Virus record (IMG/VR): IMGVR_UViG_3300026484_000087 | Coordinates: 142,245 to 206,244 of that record | Strand: one strand, 5' to 3' | DNA length: 64,000 nucleotides | Shown here: piece by piece, positions 1-48,910 of the stretch | Position numbering within the stretch: the first letter of the stretch is position 1 | How the letters are laid out: each line of letters opens with the position of its first letter | Position numbers and translations under genes: made by a program | The notes under the pieces: generated by a model | Databases searched by the model: none | Seen by the model: the letters and a program-made list of their open reading frames with translations, nothing else | Told to the model about the DNA's origin: nothing

Positions 1-3000
1 TTATCTAAGATACTTAAAGAAGTAAGTTCTAGTAGATCAGGTAATGAGGAAGAAGAACTTAGATTTGATTATGATACAGGTTCTTTTAAAACAAAATCAG
101 ATATATCTGATAACTTAACAACAAAGCTGGATAATAAGCTTTTGGATTCTGGTACAACATTTAGTATCGATAGAATATTAAACGATATAGATAAAGAAAT
201 AAAACTTAATCTATCTGAAGAAGAATTAGCAGACATTAAAGAAAATATTTTAATGTATACTATAAATGGTAAATCTTTAAATCCTAAAACTCTAGAGAAA
301 AATGGTTTTTACGACGATCTTAATCCAGAGTTGGCAGATAAATTCAAAACAGCTATAGATAAATACCTAAATGTTGAGGACGATAAATTAAGAGATACTA
401 GGGTTAGTTTCCTTAATAAAGAATTAAATAACATTAAAACAAATGCTCCAAGTCCACAAGATATACTTGAAAGCTATGATTCATCTGGAAGTATGGATGT
501 TCTGGTAGATAAAGGCTTTGTTAAACTTGATGAGAAAACAGGTGACTATAAATTAGATAAGGATAATTATAGAGAGTTACTTGGTAAGTCTGTTAGAAAC
601 ATTAAGGATAAAGAAGAAGTAAAAGATAAAGAGTATAAATCTTTTGCTGAAAAGTTACTAGCTGATAAAATGAAGAAAGCTGGAATATCTAAGGACGAAG
701 AATCTGTTACAAATGAACCATCTAGTAATACAGGTAAGTTCTTTAAGGGTATTGCCACAAGTGTAAAAGGGTTTAGTACAAATCTTGAACAAAATGCTAT
801 AGATCTAGTAGATGGCAAAAAAGATATAAGTGGTAAAATATCTGAATTAGGTAAGGGTACAAAAGAGTACATCACTGGCAAAAAAGATTTATCAAATCTT
901 AGTTTTAGTACAGAAGCCAGCGATGACTTTAATCCATTAGCACCTATAAAAGTTAAGAGGTCTTTACTTACCGATTTTAAAACTGGTAAGGATTTTGTTA
1001 GTGGAATACATTCTATATCTGATGTTAAAAATATACTGGAATCTACTGATAAATATAAAACAATAGAAAGTAAAATAAAAGCTGTTAAGAAATTGGCAGA
1101 AGAATCGGAAAATCCTAAAGAGTTTGTAGAATCTTTTAGGAAAACTGATGAATATAAAAAACTATCAACTAGCGGTAAAGCAGCGATAGATAAAGTTAGT
1201 GGTACTATAAGTACTGTTGGAAAAGCCATTAAGGAAGATGTAGAAAATACAAAAACTTTTAAAACAGCTGAAACGGCAGTTACTAGAGGTAAGAAATTAG
1301 CATCTGATGTTGTTAATAGTAAGCCAATTAAAAAGATAACTGAATCTAAGATAGTTACAAATGCTATTGAAGACTTAGATGGAATAAAAACTAAAGTTAC
1401 TAATTTAGCTAATCTATCAGATATGTCTACAGTTGTAGAAGAGTTATGGGTAAAAGTTGAAAGTAAAATAGAAGAGCTAGAAGCATTAGATAAAAATGAT
1501 GTTATAAATAAAAGAATAGAAGCTCTTAGAAATTTATCTTCAGATATAGAAAAATTTGAAGTAGATGAAAATAATATAAATGAAAGTAGAAAAACAGTAT
1601 TAGGTTTTATAAGTACTTTAAGTAAATTACTATCAACAGCTATTGCCACGGATGTTAAAGATACTATAGTTAGTAAAGTATCTCCTATTAGTAAGAAGAT
1701 AAGTCATGTTACTAATAAGTATACATTTAAGAAACCTACAATCGATGAAAAAGATACTAATGCGGAAGAAGTTAGTAAGAAAGTAGAAAAGAAAACTACT
1801 AAACAAACTTATAAACCAAAACCGAGTAGAAAATATATTAAGAAAGAAGCAGGTGAAGTAATACCTGGTAAACCTACTATTATAGCTGGTAAGGCTTCTA
1901 GTTATAAATCTGCAGTAGTTCCTGATAGAAAACCTACATTTGATTTCAGCGATAACAATGCTAAACAGGCTATAATTGATAAATTGAAGTTTACTAAAGG
2001 TGGACAGTATAAGTTCAGTTCTTCAGCGGATGTAGAGCAATTAAAAGATATACTTAAGTTACCGGCTATACCTGTTAAAATAGTTAGATTGTTATTAGAT
2101 TTTAATTTTATAGGAACAATAGGTTCTGATAGCACAATGCCAGCATCATTTAGTGCAGCATTCGTAAAAGAGGTACCTGGTCTAAAAGATGACTATCTAT
2201 TCTTAATAACTAAACAAACTTTAGATATGGCAGAGGCTAATCCAGAAGTACTTATAGAAATGATATCTCATGAACATGAGCATTTGGTTCAAACTACTGA
2301 TGGTAGATTAAGATTTCCTCAACAGGATGAAAGTATAGCTGGTCACTACTACAGTGAAATAGATTTTGATAAAGATAAATTCAAAACAGCTACACATTTA
2401 ATACCGTTTAAACATTACTTAGATTCTCCATGGGAAACAGAAGCATATAGAGAAGGTTACTCTAATGTATATGATTACTATATAGAGAATGGTATAATAC
2501 CTGAAAAGACGACTAGAGAAGAGTTTATAAAACAAGCTCAAGACACTAACTTCAAACAGATAAGAGACCAGAACAAAGTAATACTTAAACAATATGAGGA
2601 TTTATTTAAACAGAATAATGCTCCATGGTATTATGATAAAGAAGGAGATATCGATTATGATAAAATACCTTCTTTAAAAGCTATGCAAGAAACGCCTACA
2701 AGTTTCACATACGAAAGTCCAAATGGGCCAGATGACGGTGTAGTAGATGTTAATGCGGAACAGATTGATATTGGAGGCGATCCAAAAGTTGCTGCCGGTA
2801 TAAAAACTGATAGAAAAGAAACCTTAAAAGATAAGCTATCTAGACAAAAAGATAAACTTGTAAATACTGGAAAAGATATAAGTAAAAAGGTTACTGCTAA
2901 TAAAACAGTAGATAAACTATTACATAAAAATAAAGATCTTACTAAGATGTCTTTTAGTACTGAAGATAATAGCTTTAATAAGTTAGCTCCGGTTAAAAGA

Positions 3001-6000
3001 GAAAATAGAATAGATAGTTTTATACAAAGTACTAAGGATACTGTTAAGGATACAAAGGATACTGTTGTAAACAGTAAACTATATAAAGACAGCATTGAAA
3101 AAATAAAATATATAGAAACATTCTTATCTAATAAAGTAGATAAAATAGTAACTCCAGATATTAAGAGAACAGTTATAGATAAAATAGATTCTTATGTTCT
3201 TGATAAAATGACAGCTCTTGGTAAGATAGATACTGATGATAAACGTAAAACATATGATGGATTACAGAGTGCTAGGGATAAACTAAAAGCTATAGATGTA
3301 AATAAAAATACAACTAAGGATTTTATAAATAGTACAAAATCGGTATATTCAGATATAAATAAATTTGGTCCGAATGAATTTAAAGAACTGGTATCTGATA
3401 TAAAAACTAAATCTATAGATAAGCTTACTGAATTTAAAGGTAGGGTTGAAGATAACGTTGCTATAAACAATATAAAAGATGATGTTATTGAAAGAGCTAC
3501 TGACGTTAAAGAGTTTGTAGACAATAATGAAACAGTTAAAAACATAAAAAACTCTGTTAGTAATGTTGTTAAAGTTAATGATATAAAAGATAGTAAAGCT
3601 GGTAAGTTAATTAAAAAACATATTCCTAAAAGTTTTACTGATAGTATAGCCAACATTAAATCTACTGTATTTGATGCTCCTAAGGATGAGAGAGTACATG
3701 AGTTCGATGTTAATGAAGAAGATAAAACTGAACAACAGGAACTAAAAGATATTCTGTTTAAGATAACTGATAGTTCTGATTCAGATAGTCTTAGATTAAA
3801 TCTAAAAATATATTTGGAAAAAGTAAATAAAGAGATAGATAAAGTAAGTGACTTCATTTCTAAAGATAAAGAAAGAGAACTTAAGTTTAGAGGAAGAGTA
3901 GATAAGTTAAAGAACATTAGTGAAAAACTATTTAATATAGACATTAATGAAAGTTCTACTATAAAAGATCTATCTAAAGAACTTAATGAGGGATTAGGTA
4001 CTCTTATATCTGACGTTACGCCATCTAAGTTTAAAACTAGTAGCGGTCCAACGAAAGAAGAAGAGGATAAAGCTAAAGAAGAAAGTAAAGAAGATTCATT
4101 ATTAGATATACTTGATTCTGATAATCCTATAGATGCATTACAAAGTAAAATTAAGAATGCCGTTAAGTCTAAAATAAAAGGCTTATTAAAATCTGGAGTT
4201 AAAGGTGCTTTTAACTTAGGTAAAGGTATTATTCAGAGAGATATTGAACGTGGTAAAAAACTTAGAGCGTTCCTTAAAAAGAAACTATTTGATAAAAAGG
4301 ATGGTTCACCTGGATTTGTTAAAACTAAACTAAATAAAGGTTTAAACTTTGCTGGTAAGGTTTTAAGAAAAGGTAAAGATCTAGCATCTGATATAAATGA
4401 TAAAAGCATAAATGTAGTTAAAGCTGATATCAGAAATGGTGAACGTCTTAGAGGCATGCTCTTTAAAAGTAAATCTAAAGATAATGAAACAAAACATGAA
4501 GAAGCTAAAACTACAGTAGAACCTATTGTCAAGATATCTAGTGCTACAAAAGATGAAAAAGTAAAAGAGATATCCGATAATGCTAAGGGTACAGTCAAAA
4601 AGAAAAAACCTATTAAATCTAAGAAATCTCATAAACAAAAAAGAGGAATAATAGATCCTTCTACTATTATATATACTAGAGGAGAACATGGACAACGTGT
4701 ACTTAAGAAAACTAGTATAGCTGGAAGTTCTAATAAACTTAGTACTAGTGCTGACAGAGATGGTGATGGTAGACGTGATGGTTCTTGGTTGGATAAGGTC
4801 TCTAAAACAAAAGATGATAAGGTAAAAGCATCTAAGAAAACAAAACAAGTAAAAGGTATATCTGGTAGTGCCAATGTAGTTAAATCTGCTTTCGATAGAG
4901 ATGGTAGCGGTAGACGTGATGGTTCTTGGTTGGATAGACTTAAAAAGAAAAAAGATACTGCGATAAATAGTGGAAAGAACATATTAGCTAAGGCTAAAGA
5001 AAAAGGTTTTTCATGGTTGCCTATGTTAATTGGTGCTTTTGGTTTCTTAAAACCATTGTTGGGCAAATTAATTGGTGGCGTAAGTAGTTTAGGTAAATTT
5101 ATAGTAAATGGTGTTGGAAGTGCTTTTAAATCTGTTGGTAGTTTCTTATTAAATGGAATTAAAGGAATCTTCGGATCATTGGGTAAAATGTTATCTGGTC
5201 CATTAGAGGCTGTTAAGGGTTTTGTTTCTAATGGTATAGACAAAGCCAAGGCTGTTGCTGGAAAAGCTCTTGATGCTGCTAAGAATGCCGGTAGTAAGGT
5301 ATTAGAAGTAGCTAAGAATTCTAAAGCTGGCAAAATTGTTGCTAACGTTGCAAGTAAGGCAAAAAATGCCATTGTATCAGGTGGATCTAAATTATTAAAC
5401 GGAGTTAAGAATTCTAAGGTGGGTGGTGTAGTTGCTAAAGTAGCTAAGAAGATACCTACTGATGGAATACTTAAACTTCTTAAATCTTTTAAAGGTTTAA
5501 TATTTAAGAAACTAGGTAAAAAAGCAGGGGCCACAGTTGCTGCTAAATTGGCTGGTAAAGTTGCATCTAGAATTGTTCCATTTGCCGGAGCAGCATTACT
5601 TGCTTATGATGCTGCTAAAATAGGTTATGATGTCTTCCATAATGGTACTAGTCTTAAGAGTGCCATATCTAAACAGATTCTTGGATTTGATTTATTTAGT
5701 AAAGACGATGTACCTAAAGATGAGGATGGTAATCCTATAAAACCAGATGAGCAAACCTCGGAAGCTTCTAAAGGTAAAAAAGATAATTCAGCTAAAGTAG
5801 AAGCAGTTGTTAAAAAGAAAGTTAAACAAGCTGGATTCATAGATGTTGACGGTAAGAAAGTAAGGGTTTCTACTAAACAAATGGCTATGATAAAGGATTT
5901 AATGGATAAGGGTGAAAGTCAAAAAGCCTTAATGTTATTAAATACTTTAAAAGAACAACAATATAAAGATAAAGATAATGATGCTAAAAATAAAGCGTTA

Positions 6001-7620
6001 GAAGAAGAGAATAATAAAATAGACGAATTTAATTCTAAGATAGATGAAAATAAAACACAATCTAAAAAAGTAATCAAAAAGAAAAGTAAAAAACTTAATA
6101 AAGTTATTTCTATTCTTAATGGCGATAAAAAGAAAATAAGCAAGAAAATAGATAAAGTATTTGAAGATAAGAATATTAATATAAAAGAAAAAAGAAAAAG
6201 AATAAGTAAATTAACGTATATAATAAACAGCATAAATACGATAATTCATGAATTAAAAAATAGTTACGATATAAATGATCCTGAGGATATTGAAGAACTT
6301 GTTAGTTTATATGGTAAAGGCTATAAATATGCTTTAAGTAAATCATTATTAGATACTCTTAATGGCATAGATAAAAATACAAAAGATATAAATACAAAGG
6401 TAAAAAGTAAATATTTAAAAGATCTTAAAGAAGATAAGGATAACAATATAGAAAAACCTAAGGAAGAAAAAGGTTTACTTAGTAGAGCTGCAGATAGCAT
6501 AAAGAATTTCTTTGGATTTAGTAGTAAGAGAGAAGAACCTACTACAATGACCCCTAGTATTAATAGTGCCAGTACAAACAGTGGCGGTAAGATAGCAAAA
6601 CTTAAACCTATGACCGCTACTGATAGTGATCTTATCTCGGACCTTAAACGTGATGAGGGAGTTGTATTACATACATATAAAGATCATCTAGGTTATAAAA
6701 CCATAGGCACAGGACATCTTACTGATGAACGTAAAGGAGGCATTCCATTACGTAAAATAATTGGTGAAGATAAAGATAATATCACTATGGATGAAAATGA
6801 TACTATATTGAAATATGATATAGATAGAACATCTAAAGAGGTAGAATCTAAAATACCATGGTTAAAGAAAAAACCAGAACCGGTTAAAAAATCTATTATT
6901 AACATGGCGTTTAACTTAGGTACTAATGGATTACTTAAATTCAAAAATACTTTAAAACATGTTAAGAATGATGAGTACAATGAGGCTGCTCATGGCATGC
7001 TTAATAGTAAATGGGCAAGACAAGTTGGTAATCGTGCTACAAGAATAGCTAGTACCGTTGCTTCTGTAGATTATGCTACAGCAAAACAACATGATAATAA
7101 AGTTACTGAAAAGCCTTCTGTATTTAATACAGATAAAGCTATAAGTAATAGTAGAAAAGTTGTTCCAGTAGCTAATAATGTTACCTATAAACCAAGACCT
7201 AAAACTGAAGTTAAATCAGTTGCTAAAGTTGAAAGTGTAGCAGCTCCTGTTAGTACTACAAATACTAGTATAGGTAAAACTATAACTAAGAATACTACCA
7301 AAATAAAAGATCCAGCTAAAACTTTAGCGGTTGAAAGTAATAAAAAACTATCTGCTGTTGGAGAAGTTAGCGATAAATCATTAAGCGAATTAAAAACACT
7401 TAATAAGACAATGACTGATTCTCTAGATATACAGAGACAAACATTAGAAGCAATGACTCAAATGTTAAATTTGAATCACGACATGCATAATAGAAGTTTA
7501 AGTATGGATAAAGATATAGTGGATGTAGAGGTATCTAAAACAAAAAAAATAGCTCCTCCGCAAATGCAATCTATGCCTAAACCAGCTATGGGACTTGAAA
7601 AAAGAAGTTTCGCAAGTTAA
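1..7620 (+). CDS. Giant tail/tape-measure-like virion protein (phiKZ gp181-like), 5'-truncated, with internal zincin and C-terminal GH24 lysozyme
   Basis: Frame 1 is open from base 1, so the true start lies upstream of the window. It has a Gly/Ala/Lys-rich amphipathic region (~5000-5650), HEHEH (HExxH) at 2269-2283 followed by PWETEAY, and the T4-lysozyme triad E-x8-D-x5-T (DEGVVLHTYKDHLGYKT) plus MAFNLG..GLLKF and SKWARQV at ~6620-7060. Confidence 0.8.
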   Translation, partial: LSKILKEVSSSRSGNEEEELRFDYDTGSFKTKSDISDNLTTKLDNKLLDSGTTFSIDRILNDIDKEIKLNLSEEELADIKENILMYTINGKSLNPKTLEKNGFYDDLNPELADKFKTAIDKYLNVEDDKLRDTRVSFLNKELNNIKTNAPSPQDILESYDSSGSMDVLVDKGFVKLDEKTGDYKLDKDNYRELLGKSVRNIKDKEEVKDKEYKSFAEKLLADKMKKAGISKDEESVTNEPSSNTGKFFKGIATSVKGFSTNLEQNAIDLVDGKKDISGKISELGKGTKEYITGKKDLSNLSFSTEASDDFNPLAPIKVKRSLLTDFKTGKDFVSGIHSISDVKNILESTDKYKTIESKIKAVKKLAEESENPKEFVESFRKTDEYKKLSTSGKAAIDKVSGTISTVGKAIKEDVENTKTFKTAETAVTRGKKLASDVVNSKPIKKITESKIVTNAIEDLDGIKTKVTNLANLSDMSTVVEELWVKVESKIEELEALDKNDVINKRIEALRNLSSDIEKFEVDENNINESRKTVLGFISTLSKLLSTAIATDVKDTIVSKVSPISKKISHVTNKYTFKKPTIDEKDTNAEEVSKKVEKKTTKQTYKPKPSRKYIKKEAGEVIPGKPTIIAGKASSYKSAVVPDRKPTFDFSDNNAKQAIIDKLKFTKGGQYKFSSSADVEQLKDILKLPAIPVKIVRLLLDFNFIGTIGSDSTMPASFSAAFVKEVPGLKDDYLFLITKQTLDMAEANPEVLIEMISHEHEHLVQTTDGRLRFPQQDESIAGHYYSEIDFDKDKFKTATHLIPFKHYLDSPWETEAYREGYSNVYDYYIENGIIPEKTTREEFIKQAQDTNFKQIRDQNKVILKQYEDLFKQNNAPWYYDKEGDIDYDKIPSLKAMQETPTSFTYESPNGPDDGVVDVNAEQIDIGGDPKVAAGIKTDRKETLKDKLSRQKDKLVNTGKDISKKVTANKTVDKLLHKNKDLTKMSFSTEDNSFNKLAPVKRENRIDSFIQSTKDTVKDTKDTVVNSKLYKDSIEKIKYIETFLSNKVDKIVTPDIKRTVIDKIDSYVLDKMTALGKIDTDDKRKTYDGLQSARDKLKAIDVNKNTTKDFINSTKSVYSDINKFGPNEFKELVSDIKTKSIDKLTEFKGRVEDNVAINNIKDDVIERATDVKEFVDNNETVKNIKNSVSNVVKVNDIKDSKAGKLIKKHIPKSFTDSIANIKSTVFDAPKDERVHEFDVNEEDKTEQQELKDILFKITDSSDSDSLRLNLKIYLEKVNKEIDKVSDFISKDKERELKFRGRVDKLKNISEKLFNIDINESSTIKDLSKELNEGLGTLISDVTPSKFKTSSGPTKEEEDKAKEESKEDSLLDILDSDNPIDALQSKIKNAVKSKIKGLLKSGVKGAFNLGKGIIQRDIERGKKLRAFLKKKLFDKKDGSPGFVKTKLNKGLNFAGKVLRKGKDLASDINDKSINVVKADIRNGERLRGMLFKSKSKDNETKHEEAKTTVEPIVKISSATKDEKVKEISDNAKGTVKKKKPIKSKKSHKQKRGIIDPSTIIYTRGEHGQRVLKKTSIAGSSNKLSTSADRDGDGRRDGSWLDKVSKTKDDKVKASKKTKQVKGISGSANVVKSAFDRDGSGRRDGSWLDRLKKKKDTAINSGKNILAKAKEKGFSWLPMLIGAFGFLKPLLGKLIGGVSSLGKFIVNGVGSAFKSVGSFLLNGIKGIFGSLGKMLSGPLEAVKGFVSNGIDKAKAVAGKALDAAKNAGSKVLEVAKNSKAGKIVANVASKAKNAIVSGGSKLLNGVKNSKVGGVVAKVAKKIPTDGILKLLKSFKGLIFKKLGKKAGATVAAKLAGKVASRIVPFAGAALLAYDAAKIGYDVFHNGTSLKSAISKQILGFDLFSKDDVPKDEDGNPIKPDEQTSEASKGKKDNSAKVEAVVKKKVKQAGFIDVDGKKVRVSTKQMAMIKDLMDKGESQKALMLLNTLKEQQYKDKDNDAKNKALEEENNKIDEFNSKIDENKTQSKKVIKKKSKKLNKVISILNGDKKKISKKIDKVFEDKNINIKEKRKRISKLTYIINSINTIIHELKNSYDINDPEDIEELVSLYGKGYKYALSKSLLDTLNGIDKNTKDINTKVKSKYLKDLKEDKDNNIEKPKEEKGLLSRAADSIKNFFGFSSKREEPTTMTPSINSASTNSGGKIAKLKPMTATDSDLISDLKRDEGVVLHTYKDHLGYKTIGTGHLTDERKGGIPLRKIIGEDKDNITMDENDTILKYDIDRTSKEVESKIPWLKKKPEPVKKSIINMAFNLGTNGLLKFKNTLKHVKNDEYNEAAHGMLNSKWARQVGNRATRIASTVASVDYATAKQHDNKVTEKPSVFNTDKAISNSRKVVPVANNVTYKPRPKTEVKSVAKVESVAAPVSTTNTSIGKTITKNTTKIKDPAKTLAVESNKKLSAVGEVSDKSLSELKTLNKTMTDSLDIQRQTLEAMTQMLNLNHDMHNRSLSMDKDIVDVEVSKTKKIAPPQMQSMPKPAMGLEKRSFAS

Positions 7621-45691: not shown

Positions 45692-47128
45692 TTAAATTTG
45701 CTCTATAGTATAGCTGTTAGTTAATTTAGATTTAATTAATCTAAATATATCACCTTCATCAGTAGTTAGGATGATAACATTATTAACAAGATCTTGTGAA
45801 GTTAGTACTGTTTGTATTAAACTATTTAGTATAGGAGTAAGTTCATCTTTAATGTATTTAACCGTTCCTTTACTAACGTCCGTTAACTCATATTTAACAT
45901 CCATATTACATGTGTTAATAAGAGTAAGTTTTTCACCATACAATAACTTACCAACCTTATTACTGTTAACAGTATCTTCTATCTCTAAAGAACTTAATGT
46001 ACTTGCATTCTCTTTAAGAACAGTATAAAGATCAGTTAATAAAGCTTTGTGTAGACTTGCTTCTCTAACATCAGTGAAATTCTCAATCGTATGCAATAAA
46101 CTCATATAGTCATCTGCAAAGCTATCTATTTTAGTAGGAGCCCCTATCATTGATCTAAAATAGTTATTAACCAATTTAGTAATAGAATTATCTATTGATT
46201 TAAAGGCTTTAGATAAAAGTGAGTTCTTACTATATTTATATTTAGCAATGAAATCAGCAACTTCTTTAAGGTTATCGCTTTCCATTACTGTTTTATAATA
46301 GAACATCTCAGTTGGATCATTAGTAACTCTATTAACTATAAAAGTATCTACAATCATAACCTCCATAGCAGTGTTCTCAAACATACCATCTTTATTATCA
46401 TGAACAATGAAGTCCATTCTATTAAACATCTCTTTAACGCTATCAACGATCTCTATTTTATCTAACACTAGGTTTAGTTTATGATCTATTTTACCGTTAA
46501 CTATTTTACCACTTATTACATTAGCCGTATCATATACGCTAGCATGTTCTGAATATTTCATAGTCTTCTTGATCTCCTCATCTGTCTTCTTTTCTATCTT
46601 GTTTTTAAACGTACCATCTTCACTAACAATAACCCTAACACATTTTAAATCAGGTGTAGTAAGAAATAAGAATTCATTACCGTCCAAAGGAGTGGTTGCA
46701 ACTAACTCTTTCTTCTTTTGTGGTTGTGGTTGTTGAGGTGCCTGCTGTGGTTGTTGTTTACTAATCATTTCATCAACATAATCTAATGCACCAAAGTTTT
46801 TACCACTATGTTTTACATCAGTACCTTGAGATAACCCATTTCTAACATTACTATTAAATATACTGCCACCAGTGTTTTGATACATTGGATCTTGTTGTTG
46901 GTTATACATTGGTCTCTGTTGCTGTGGTTGTTGTTGAACTGGATTTATATACATACCTGTATTTTGCTGTTGCGGAGGATATATATTCTGTTGCTGATTC
47001 ATCATTTGTTGTATGTGTGGTAATAATGAATTGTAATCACTAGCTTCCTGTTGGTTGAATGGTATGCCAGCTACCCTCATAGCCTCCAGTTTATTAAAAT
47101 ACTCTACTTGACTTTGATTTAATGCCAT
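45692..47128 (-). CDS. Hypothetical protein with Q/P/N-rich low-complexity N-terminus
   Basis: 478 aa with QQMMNQQQNIYPPQQQ... in the first ~135 aa. AAAGGA RBS. Confidence 0.75.
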   Translation of the reverse strand: MALNQSQVEYFNKLEAMRVAGIPFNQQEASDYNSLLPHIQQMMNQQQNIYPPQQQNTGMYINPVQQQPQQQRPMYNQQQDPMYQNTGGSIFNSNVRNGLSQGTDVKHSGKNFGALDYVDEMISKQQPQQAPQQPQPQKKKELVATTPLDGNEFLFLTTPDLKCVRVIVSEDGTFKNKIEKKTDEEIKKTMKYSEHASVYDTANVISGKIVNGKIDHKLNLVLDKIEIVDSVKEMFNRMDFIVHDNKDGMFENTAMEVMIVDTFIVNRVTNDPTEMFYYKTVMESDNLKEVADFIAKYKYSKNSLLSKAFKSIDNSITKLVNNYFRSMIGAPTKIDSFADDYMSLLHTIENFTDVREASLHKALLTDLYTVLKENASTLSSLEIEDTVNSNKVGKLLYGEKLTLINTCNMDVKYELTDVSKGTVKYIKDELTPILNSLIQTVLTSQDLVNNVIILTTDEGDIFRLIKSKLTNSYTIEQI

Positions 47129-47152
47129 TTGTTTTCCTTTATATTTGTATTT

Positions 47153-47183
47153 GATACTGCCTGTATCTAAGTTAATAATATAT
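47153..47183 (-). promoter_or_regulatory. Class I promoter-like ATATATTAT plus GATAC-AGGCA-GTATC hairpin
   Basis: Copy 4 of 4. Confidence 0.7.
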
Positions 47184-47204
47184 CATTATTAACTGTTTAA
47201 AAAT

Positions 47205-47230
47205 GATAACCTAGATTAATCTAGGTTATC
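47205..47230. terminator. 26-bp perfect palindrome
   Basis: GATAACCTAGATTAATCTAGGTTATC over the stop of the RNAP-subunit gene. Confidence 0.7.
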
Positions 47231-48910
47231 TATTTCAACTTCTATCTCCGAATTAAGAATCTCTTTATTCTCAATTATTTTACCATTAAACATCTTATCT
47301 AATAGTGTTATGCTTTCCATAATATCTTCTTTCGGCTTGAGTCTACCACTAGCTATATCTAATGTTATAAATGGATTTATTCTAAGCTTTGGTGTAGGTG
47401 CTTTCTTAGGTAGGTATAATATACTACCCATAAATAAATCTGGACCAGTAATAGTTCTAGTAGCCTTTGGGAATACTTGAGATTTACTCTTGGTAACATT
47501 CTTACCACGTTCCTGTAACTCAAGTACTGAAGTAATCTTATGGTACTTATTATCACTAGCATAATCCGTAAGCAACATTGTAATGTTCTGGTTTGAACTC
47601 TTAATAAGCATAAATATCTTCTTAGAGGATATGTTAGCGTTGAATATTCTAGTAACCTCATTTATAGCAAGATCTTTCTTAAGAGATTTTCTAGTAAGTT
47701 CAAAGATAGTTTTGTTTATACCAAGTATGATGTCATACATAATGTAATATAGAACATCTATGTATCTATTAAATATATTGTTATTATATGTTTTACTATT
47801 TAATAACCACTCGCTATATTTACCAAGTATAACCGCTAACAGATCAAAGAAGTCGTTAACCATAATTCCTATTTCTGCTAACTTTGTCTTAATTAGATTA
47901 TCTATATAAGACTTTAAAGATATAAAATGATCAACTATATCTGCATAGATTCTATCTGCAGAATAATTGTTCTTAAATATGATTTTACCTAACATAAGTT
48001 TCCAGTAAACCAACTCATTCTTTAAATCTCCAGAATTTATAACATCAACCATTTCATTAGCATTAGCAGGTAGTGCATCTAAGGTATATATTAGGCCTAC
48101 TATGATGTTTTCTACGTAAGGAGTAGTTTTACCCTTTGGAACTAAAACTTTAACGTTATGACCAATGTAGTGCGTTTCTTTAAGGCTTCTTGGTTTAAGC
48201 TTTATAGATTCATAAATATCATGTGTTTCTTGATACTTACTAACGTCTTGATCATATGTGATTATAGGTTCTATGCCAGCATACTTTAAGAATGTATCTT
48301 TAAAACCATACTCTGCTAATAAATACAATGCTATAGGTGGCACTATGCTTCCAAGATCATCCTTTATGGCTCTAGTAGAAACTCTATAAATAGTTGACGA
48401 TATTACTTGTCCAGCTATCTTATTGCCATTTAGGATAACGTTTCTATTTGTACGGGTAAAGATAAGTTTATCTCTTAATAGACGTATAAATACTTTCTTT
48501 TCATCTGGACTAACAACAGTATCTGAAAGCACTGGTACTATATGGTATTTAGTATCAGATATATGCATCATACCACCATCTTCTAAAAATGGCATATATA
48601 AATATCTTTTAGGCAATGGTGCTCCATTGTAACTAAATAATAGTTCTATCTTATAAATATCCGATACCGCTATATCATAATTTATTCTATTGTTACCAGT
48701 TGTAAATAAAGTATCGTATTCTTCTTTAGGAGATAACATTCTCCAGCCATGGTATTCTAACTTTTCAGTAGCTGATTTCATAGCACTTCTAATTATAGCA
48801 TCTATATATTCTGGTGCTGATTTAACAGATTCAGTTGCTATACCGTTAACCACGGCATCGTTAAAATGAGGAACACAATTATCCATCATTTTACTTAAAA
48901 CATCATTCAT
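47216..48910 (-). CDS. Non-virion RNA polymerase beta N-terminal subunit (phiKZ gp123-like)
   Basis: YLYMPF...G...ISDTKYHIVPVLSD.V.S....VF.RLLRDKL.F motif, located two genes from the capsid gene as in phiKZ. Confidence 0.78.
   Translation of the reverse strand: MNDVLSKMMDNCVPHFNDAVVNGIATESVKSAPEYIDAIIRSAMKSATEKLEYHGWRMLSPKEEYDTLFTTGNNRINYDIAVSDIYKIELLFSYNGAPLPKRYLYMPFLEDGGMMHISDTKYHIVPVLSDTVVSPDEKKVFIRLLRDKLIFTRTNRNVILNGNKIAGQVISSTIYRVSTRAIKDDLGSIVPPIALYLLAEYGFKDTFLKYAGIEPIITYDQDVSKYQETHDIYESIKLKPRSLKETHYIGHNVKVLVPKGKTTPYVENIIVGLIYTLDALPANANEMVDVINSGDLKNELVYWKLMLGKIIFKNNYSADRIYADIVDHFISLKSYIDNLIKTKLAEIGIMVNDFFDLLAVILGKYSEWLLNSKTYNNNIFNRYIDVLYYIMYDIILGINKTIFELTRKSLKKDLAINEVTRIFNANISSKKIFMLIKSSNQNITMLLTDYASDNKYHKITSVLELQERGKNVTKSKSQVFPKATRTITGPDLFMGSILYLPKKAPTPKLRINPFITLDIASGRLKPKEDIMESITLLDKMFNGKIIENKEILNSEIEVEIDNLD

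Follow-up and report, generated by a model that had tools for sequence, protein, structure and literature searches.

The giant gene and its family

The stretch of DNA treated here (the window, 64,000 nucleotides in all) comprises bases 142,245–206,244 of the 206,244-bp IMG/VR virus record IMGVR_UViG_3300026484_000087, which has a completeness estimate of 77%. A giant gene on the plus strand occupies its first 7620 nucleotides. It encodes a protein of the phiKZ gp181 type that carries a T4-type lysozyme domain near its C-terminus and, in its centre, an orphan domain with features of zincin metallopeptidases; the latter is the main subject of this analysis. Both domains had been pointed out in an initial annotation of the window, which gave the range as 1980–7065. 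This range covers the two domains but not the whole gene. Window positions 1–7620 contain residues 438–2976 plus the stop codon (7618–7620) of a single open reading frame (ORF) of 2976 amino acids, termed P0002, which extends past the window's 5′ edge and starts 1311 nt upstream of window base 1 (full extent L003:10690–19620). There are full-length homologues of 2281–2987 amino acids.

Little is understood of how nucleus-forming jumbo phages get through the host envelope and withstand the earliest moments of infection, and gp181-type proteins are the largest ejected component of these phages. Residues 5–712 of P0002 fall into phrog_3201 of the PHROGs database (E 4.8e-57). In a tblastn search of phage records with the whole protein, residues 30–640 align with giant proteins of phiKZ-like jumbo phages, among them those of Ralstonia phages RSF1 and RSL2, Escherichia phage Goslar and Serratia phage PCH45. 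A direct BLASTP comparison with phiKZ gp181 gives an alignment over residues 196–636 (E 3e-12). Upstream of the giant gene, and on the opposite strand, are two large ORFs that encode the virion RNA polymerase β and β′ proteins (phrog_2986, E 1e-166; phrog_3148, E 0). Divergent virion RNA polymerase genes are also found beside the giant gene in phiKZ (gp180 and gp178 next to gp181), RSF1 and Goslar. Given this N-terminal homology and the same RNA polymerase neighbourhood, P0002 corresponds to phiKZ gp181 in both position and sequence. The gene encodes a giant virion protein of the gp181 type in a phiKZ-like jumbo phage, a tail or ejection protein, in support of the initial annotation's description of a giant tail protein. 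The phiKZ protein itself is a virion-associated lysin located in the cell-puncturing device of the tail (PMC5380687).

A search with residues 1–700 of P0002 recovered 42 family members of 1664–3857 amino acids. From N- to C-terminus, P0002 has a conserved region of about 1000 amino acids, a variable centre, two DxDxDG-like repeats and Gly-rich hydrophobic segments; these are followed by a conserved block, an exchangeable peptidoglycan-hydrolase cassette and a conserved tail.

The lysin cassette

The GH24 domain (6649–7032) encompasses residues 2654–2781 of the 2976 and thus lies in the C-terminal quarter of the protein. Its sequence securely marks it as an intact lysozyme domain of the T4 type, a predicted muramidase. 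Pfam model PF00959 scores 41.3 bits against a cut-off of 22.3, and 44.8 bits when the domain is excised. T4 lysozyme chains match at E 1e-18 in a phmmer search of PDB sequences, and the alignment pairs residues E2656, D2665 and T2671 (6655–6702) with the catalytic E11, D20 and T26 of T4 lysozyme. The lysozyme region also belongs to phrog_13211, baseplate hub and tail lysozyme. The E-x8-D-x5-T pattern by itself is weak, as there is a second, meaningless copy at window positions 46–93. The profile and alignment evidence bears out the intact catalytic triad that the initial annotation had read from this pattern.

The same annotation placed a transglycosylase in phiKZ gp181, correctly so, and proposed a lysozyme domain swap. 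The phiKZ protein has an SLT transglycosylase at residues 1885–1978; RSF1 also has SLT, and Goslar shows a weak GH19-like match. GH24 does replace SLT in P0002, but there is nothing special in this, as lysins are routinely exchanged in the family. Precomputed Pfam domains of the 42 members include GH24 (P0002, P0003 and P0007), a VgrG3-like C-terminal domain, SLT, Amidase_2, VanY, Peptidase_M15_4, NlpC/P60 and glucosaminidase. Some members have two lysin enzymes. All cassettes whose positions were mapped fall in the last quarter of the protein, and where two enzymes are paired, no more than about 300 amino acids separate them. Lysin exchange is the norm in the gp181 family rather than a special event, and the family is a mosaic carrier: its C-terminal cassettes are swapped freely, and at least eight types of enzyme occur in the relatives.

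The same variation is seen within the nine-member clade to which P0002 belongs (see below). GH24 is present in P0002, P0003 and P0007, and the VgrG3-like domain in P0005, P0009, P0010 and P0011. A domain comparison within the clade recognised no lysin in P0004 or P0008, and P0004 has a deletion at the position of the P0002 GH24 domain. At about residues 2060–2100, P0004 (contig L006) has a short stretch, 'GY-TGKGDPDKKAGI-VHKDEHVT', where P0002 has GH24. This stretch may resemble a motif that is often found towards the C-terminal end of tape measure proteins. Elsewhere in the family, the distant member P0037 shows a weak match to Peptidase_S74, the endosialidase chaperone, at residues 730–769. 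The match hints that other gp181-type proteins might contain self-cleaving modules.

An orphan HExxH module

The second domain of interest is a module of 277 amino acids (1900–2730, residues 1071–1347) situated in the variable central region, with Pro/Gly-rich linkers on both sides. It has an HEHEH sequence (2269–2283, residues 1194–1198), i.e. the pattern HExxH formed by H1194, E1195 and H1198, and the invariant Q1201 follows. Downstream is SPWETEAY (2425–2448), an instance of the invariant S-x-W-E-x-E-A-Y; its PWETEAY part, at 2428–2448, represents residues 1247–1253. The domain ends with a PWYYD motif (2623–2637, residues 1312–1316), of which the W, Y and D are invariant. The HEHEH and PWETEAY motifs, as well as the lysozyme pattern described above, are at the positions given in the initial annotation. 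P0002 has 28 His in 2976 residues, and the number of HExxH motifs expected by chance is 0.018.

A survey of domain architecture among orthologues had been proposed as a check, and in the 42 family members it shows that lysin types vary and that the module is present in seven. These were found with a hidden Markov model of the module and are P0002, P0003, P0004, P0005, P0009, P0010 and P0011. The gp181-type proteins of phiKZ, RSF1 and Goslar lack it. The seven module sequences are 23–93% identical to that of P0002, and all of them have H1194, E1195, H1198 and Q1201, giving HExxHxxQ. Further invariant elements are G-x-L, P-F, S-x-W-E1249-x-E1251-A-Y-x-x-G, Y-D and W-x-Y-D. E1249 and E1251 are 51–53 residues beyond H1198. 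In sequence terms, the conservation pattern of the module is that of an active site.

Wider searches returned very few relatives. In a phmmer search of 1.84 billion representatives, the real relatives of the module are P0004 (48% identity) and P0005 (33%) alone, and both are giant gp181-family proteins. Another match in this search, P0006, was dismissed as a low-complexity false match. A tblastn search of 50,697 phage records with the module gave no match. When IMG/VR, JGI metagenomes and 185,579 prokaryote genomes were scanned with profile guidance, the matches were its own contig and one 93%-identical copy alone. A profile word search for stand-alone module proteins of 152–485 amino acids found none, and no module paralogue turned up when all six frames of the phage record were searched. 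The new element is thus a sequence-orphan, zincin-like family that is confined, within these searches, to the gp181 centre in one small clade. A gp181 homologue with a different lysin, by comparison, is of an already known kind and adds a new member to a known family.

Fold of the module

Two AlphaFold2 runs on the module gave a mean pLDDT (the confidence score of the model) of 58.8 and 63.5. The N-terminal half is modelled at pLDDT 70–93 and has, in order, three helices, a sheet of three strands, one short helix and a long helix that carries HExxH. In the two models the motif is on a predicted helix at model residues 115–133 or 99–117, directly after the three-stranded sheet. The 40–50 residues that lead to SxWExEAY have a pLDDT below 50. 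The core of zincin metallopeptidase (MPTase) domains has been described as a three-stranded sheet before the helix with HExxH (PMC5512222), and the topology predicted for the N-terminal half of the module is the same; in the predicted core, a helix with the candidate Glu would come later, in the part modelled at low confidence.

Solved structures that align to the well-modelled half are mostly zincins, from several families. The highest score is with domain I of anthrax lethal factor, residues 32–165 (Z 5.1). HtpX follows at Z 4.8, with 89 of 101 residues aligned, and then leukotriene A4 hydrolase and an M1 aminopeptidase (Z 4.2–4.6), BlaR1 (Z 4.0–4.5) and ArdC (Z 4.1). TTHA0227, Acel_2062, Wss1 and PPEP-1 align at Z 3.0–4.3. 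A search of BFVD with the module model has SprT-like and phage metallopeptidase proteins among its matches, and a shape search of the ESM Atlas has U49, M78, M48, M10 and M1 clusters. The language-model neighbours of the module are DUF3920, SprT-like and Zn_peptidase_2 clusters (0.91–0.94). Because three weak, partly independent lines agree and the motif is invariant, a zincin-like fold is reasonably supported. We consider such a fold probable, without an assignable family.

Position and history of the module

The module is in the variable central part of P0002, about 1300 amino acids upstream of the lysozyme, from which the hydrophobic segments separate it. Its closest surroundings can be compared with those in P0007, the nearest relative of P0002 after the 93%-identical P0003. 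P0007 is 51% identical to P0002 over residues 29–1000, and a second aligned part, residues 2056–2975, shows 45% identity. The central region between them is about 480 amino acids long in P0007 as against about 1056 in P0002; it is unrelated and has no module.

A quick maximum-likelihood tree was built from the first 700 amino acids of family members. All seven carriers are in a single nine-member clade (SH-aLRT branch support 97), together with the module-less P0007 and P0008. Such a distribution implies either that the module was gained once and lost twice, or that lineages have exchanged it. Since two clade members are without the module and the lysin varies among carriers, the module is an accessory element that is independent of lysin type and belongs to the variable centre, not to the lysin cassette. 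One clade's variable centre has thus gained an enzyme-like module without described relatives.

Comparison with known systems

P0002 shares with phiKZ gp181 (2237 amino acids) and its homologues in RSF1, RSL2, Goslar and PCH45 the N-terminal homology, the locus, the giant size and a hydrolase in the C-terminal quarter. It differs from this group in that its lysin is GH24 and not SLT (phiKZ and RSF1) or GH19-like (Goslar), and in being 700–850 amino acids longer with a central HExxH module.

The metallopeptidases of polyvalent proteins provide a second parallel. As predicted for P0002, a large multidomain protein that is delivered by the virion contains a metallopeptidase-like HExxH-plus-Glu domain, often together with a lysozyme (Iyer et al., 2017; PMC5512222), and zincin-like domains in such lysozyme-bearing, virion-delivered proteins are an established theme (PMC5512222). 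However, no Pfam family, zincin models included, matches the P0002 module at E up to 10, and P0002 is a gp181-type tail protein and not of the head-packaged N4-RNAP, DarB or ArdC type. Searches of P0002 against Pfam, PHROGs and NCBIfam detected no further conflict-type effector domains.

There is also a resemblance to tape measure and tail-tip proteins. Phage T5 Pb2 and the tape measure muramidase of phiIPLA35 are, like P0002, long and largely helical Cys-free chains that combine hydrophobic, Gly-rich segments with a muralytic domain at the C-terminus. Proteins of this type are classed as virion-associated lysins (PMC5380687). The P0002 gene, by contrast, is outside the tail-chaperone and baseplate module, and the protein is far longer than a ruler would need to be. 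The known peptidase modules of such proteins act on the cell wall and are not zincins of the HExxH kind.

Lastly, the minimal gluzincins of families M48 and M56, represented by HtpX and BlaR1, give some of the highest structural scores against the well-modelled half of the module. The third zinc ligand of M48 peptidases is found in an E-x-x-A-D motif, and E1249-x-x-A1252 of the module resembles it. However, the module has no match to the M48 profile PF01435, and the structural scores are under significance. PF01435 is absent also from a six-frame search of the whole record.

Possible roles of the module

The best explanation, to which we give a probability of about one half, is that P0002 is a gp181-type protein with a GH24 lysin and an accessory, ejected metalloprotease that cuts proteins at entry. 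By analogy with phiKZ, the giant protein would ride in the tail and leave it at infection, and the GH24 domain would digest the cell wall locally as the tail penetrates, as shown experimentally for phiKZ gp181. The module would be an active gluzincin-type metallopeptidase. H1194 and H1198 are predicted to bind zinc and E1195 to serve as the general base; E1249 or E1251 on a downstream helix would be the third ligand. As its motif, fold and the precedent of polyvalent proteins suggest, the module would leave the virion with its carrier and cut protein substrates at entry. The likeliest substrate would be a host envelope, periplasmic or cytoplasmic protein, and the next likeliest the carrier polypeptide itself. 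The analysis gave no support for the targets suggested in the initial annotation (an S-layer, surface or periplasmic protein, or a defence factor), which are guesses. We read the module as an accessory entry activity because it is remote from the lysin (some 1300 residues), separated from it by the hydrophobic segments and missing in two close relatives.

Several points weigh against this explanation. The added zincin protease of the initial annotation stands as a discrete, conserved module with an invariant HExxH/Glu signature and with structural neighbours that are mostly zincins, but all of its matches are sub-significant and no curated profile recognises it. Neither Pfam (E up to 10) nor NCBIfam (E up to 1) has a match to the module, as a single sequence or as a profile, and a PDB sequence search with the module, alone and as a profile, also gave none. 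Each of the AlphaFold2 runs was built on a four-sequence alignment, and the segment with the candidate third ligand is modelled at pLDDT 30–60. The structure comparison that the initial annotation had called for returned mostly zincins, but weakly: all matches are under the significance guides of the tools themselves (Z ≤5.1, Foldseek E ≥0.03, template modelling score <0.5), and the C-lobes of HECT domains score equally with zincins for the same region of the module. The location of P0002 in the virion is also an extrapolation from phiKZ gp181 alone, the one protein of this type with a known presence in the tail (Briers, 2008, as cited in PMC5380687).

A more specific version of the protease explanation can be put forward tentatively, although we consider it rather unlikely: the module would found a new zincin family, the sole carrier of which is the ejected giant tail protein of one low-GC phiKZ-like clade, and would be an injected effector that cuts a specific host envelope or immunity protein before phage gene expression.

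The module may instead act on its own carrier, cutting the giant protein at virion maturation or after ejection and freeing the N-terminal, central and lysin parts. For MPTases of large proteins that the virion delivers, e.g. DdrB of phage P1, autoproteolysis has been proposed as the chief function (PMC5512222). Pro/Gly-rich linkers flank the module, and two copies of a SFSTE-x-FNxLAP motif, at residues 737 and 1420, bracket the module. This motif does not track the module, however. Its first copy is present in the module-less P0007 and partly in P0004, and it is absent from four module carriers. As its distribution does not follow the domain, the motif was dropped as a processing site tied to the module. 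Moreover, P0007, P0008 and phiKZ gp181 keep the same overall architecture without the module, and processing by it is therefore not essential. We consider self-processing unlikely. A function in the cell wall, with the module a peptidase for peptidoglycan stem peptides or envelope tethers that is paired with GH24, appears very unlikely. Pairs of a glycosidase and a wall peptidase do occur in many family members (VanY/SLT, VanY/VgrG3-like, M15_4/SLT and NlpC/P60/SLT). However, the paired peptidases are close to the glycosidase in the C-terminal quarter, whereas the module is in mid-protein, far upstream and across the hydrophobic segments; the known wall peptidases of the family are LAS-type or NlpC/P60 and not HExxH enzymes; and P0004 retains the module with no recognisable glycosidase. 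The VanY, M15 and NlpC/P60 peptidases of relatives are at another position in the protein, and the idea that the module takes their place was therefore dropped. Perhaps the module is not a protease at all and is a structural metal-binding unit or another enzyme on a zincin-like scaffold. This would agree with the lack of a peptidase profile match and the weak fold evidence. A non-peptidase HExxH domain, that of the ChlB alpha-ketoglutarate oxygenase (8s5f), scores Z 3.8–4.0, close to the peptidases, and the best structural match, domain I of anthrax lethal factor, is a non-catalytic zincin-like fold. Yet E1195, both His and the downstream Glu pair are invariant at 23–93% identity while their surroundings diverge, the pattern expected of a working active site, and we judge a non-protease quite unlikely. 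As to role, we would place action on host proteins first, then self-processing, then wall peptides and last a non-catalytic function.

If the module is an active protease, it would represent a new peptidase family and a virion-delivered effector that acts before phage gene expression, and it would offer a tractable entry point into early host takeover. If it is inactive, the finding shrinks to another gp181 homologue with a different lysin.

Other features of the protein and its surroundings

The conserved N-terminal gp181-family region extends from residue 1 to about residue 1000, and its remainder within the window is at 1–1689. The motif that brackets the module, in full (L/M)SFSTE-x-FNxLAP, is 15–16 amino acids long; its two copies are at window positions 898–945 and 2947–2991 and are also seen as a short DNA repeat. 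Two DRDGxGRRDGSW repeats, which are DxDxDG-like, are encoded at 4753–4788 (residues 2022–2033) and 4894–4929 (residues 2069–2080). They are kept in P0003, P0004, P0005, P0007 and P0009 and are just upstream of a Gly-rich hydrophobic segment. In appearance they are like DxDxDG calcium-binding loops. The hydrophobic segment (5005–5223, residues 2106–2178) was identified by a hydropathy scan and from the sequence, and may be membrane-active or tape-measure-like. Next is the best-conserved C-terminal block (5287–5769, residues 2200–2360), with 44–53% identity to P0008 and P0010; the hydropathy scan shows a second hydrophobic stretch inside it, at residues 2287–2310. The conserved C-terminal tail (7201–7617, residues 2838–2976) is common to relatives that have other lysins or none (P0004, P0005 and P0010).

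P0002 contains no cysteine in its 2976 residues and has 15% lysine, and most of the 42 family members have 0–2 Cys. The Cys-free composition fits a protein that travels unfolded through the tail tube.

Downstream of the giant gene are small ORFs of no known kind, and with the virion RNA polymerase genes upstream, the gene is not in the tail module where a tape measure gene would be located. On the contig of P0003, an extra ORF of 303 amino acids (L007:3552–4463) separates the giant gene from the RNA polymerase gene. A weak NUMOD1 match suggests that it encodes a homing endonuclease. A DUF723 ORF is present farther upstream of the giant gene on the same contig, and neither ORF is found at this position in the window's record.

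There is a single other HExxH ORF in the 206-kb record, of 481 amino acids on the minus strand (G000:C1, about 45844–47286). It contains the sequence LLHEVGHAF and is unrelated to the module. A conserved zincin-like peptidase that stands alone has been reported for phiKZ-like phages (PMC7824862), and this ORF may encode it.

The G+C content is about 29% across the window (range about 27–33%). By word-index search, the window DNA is present in a metagenome run from a hydrothermal vent, which is a possible source of the DNA. Giant proteins related to P0002 come from several other metagenomes.

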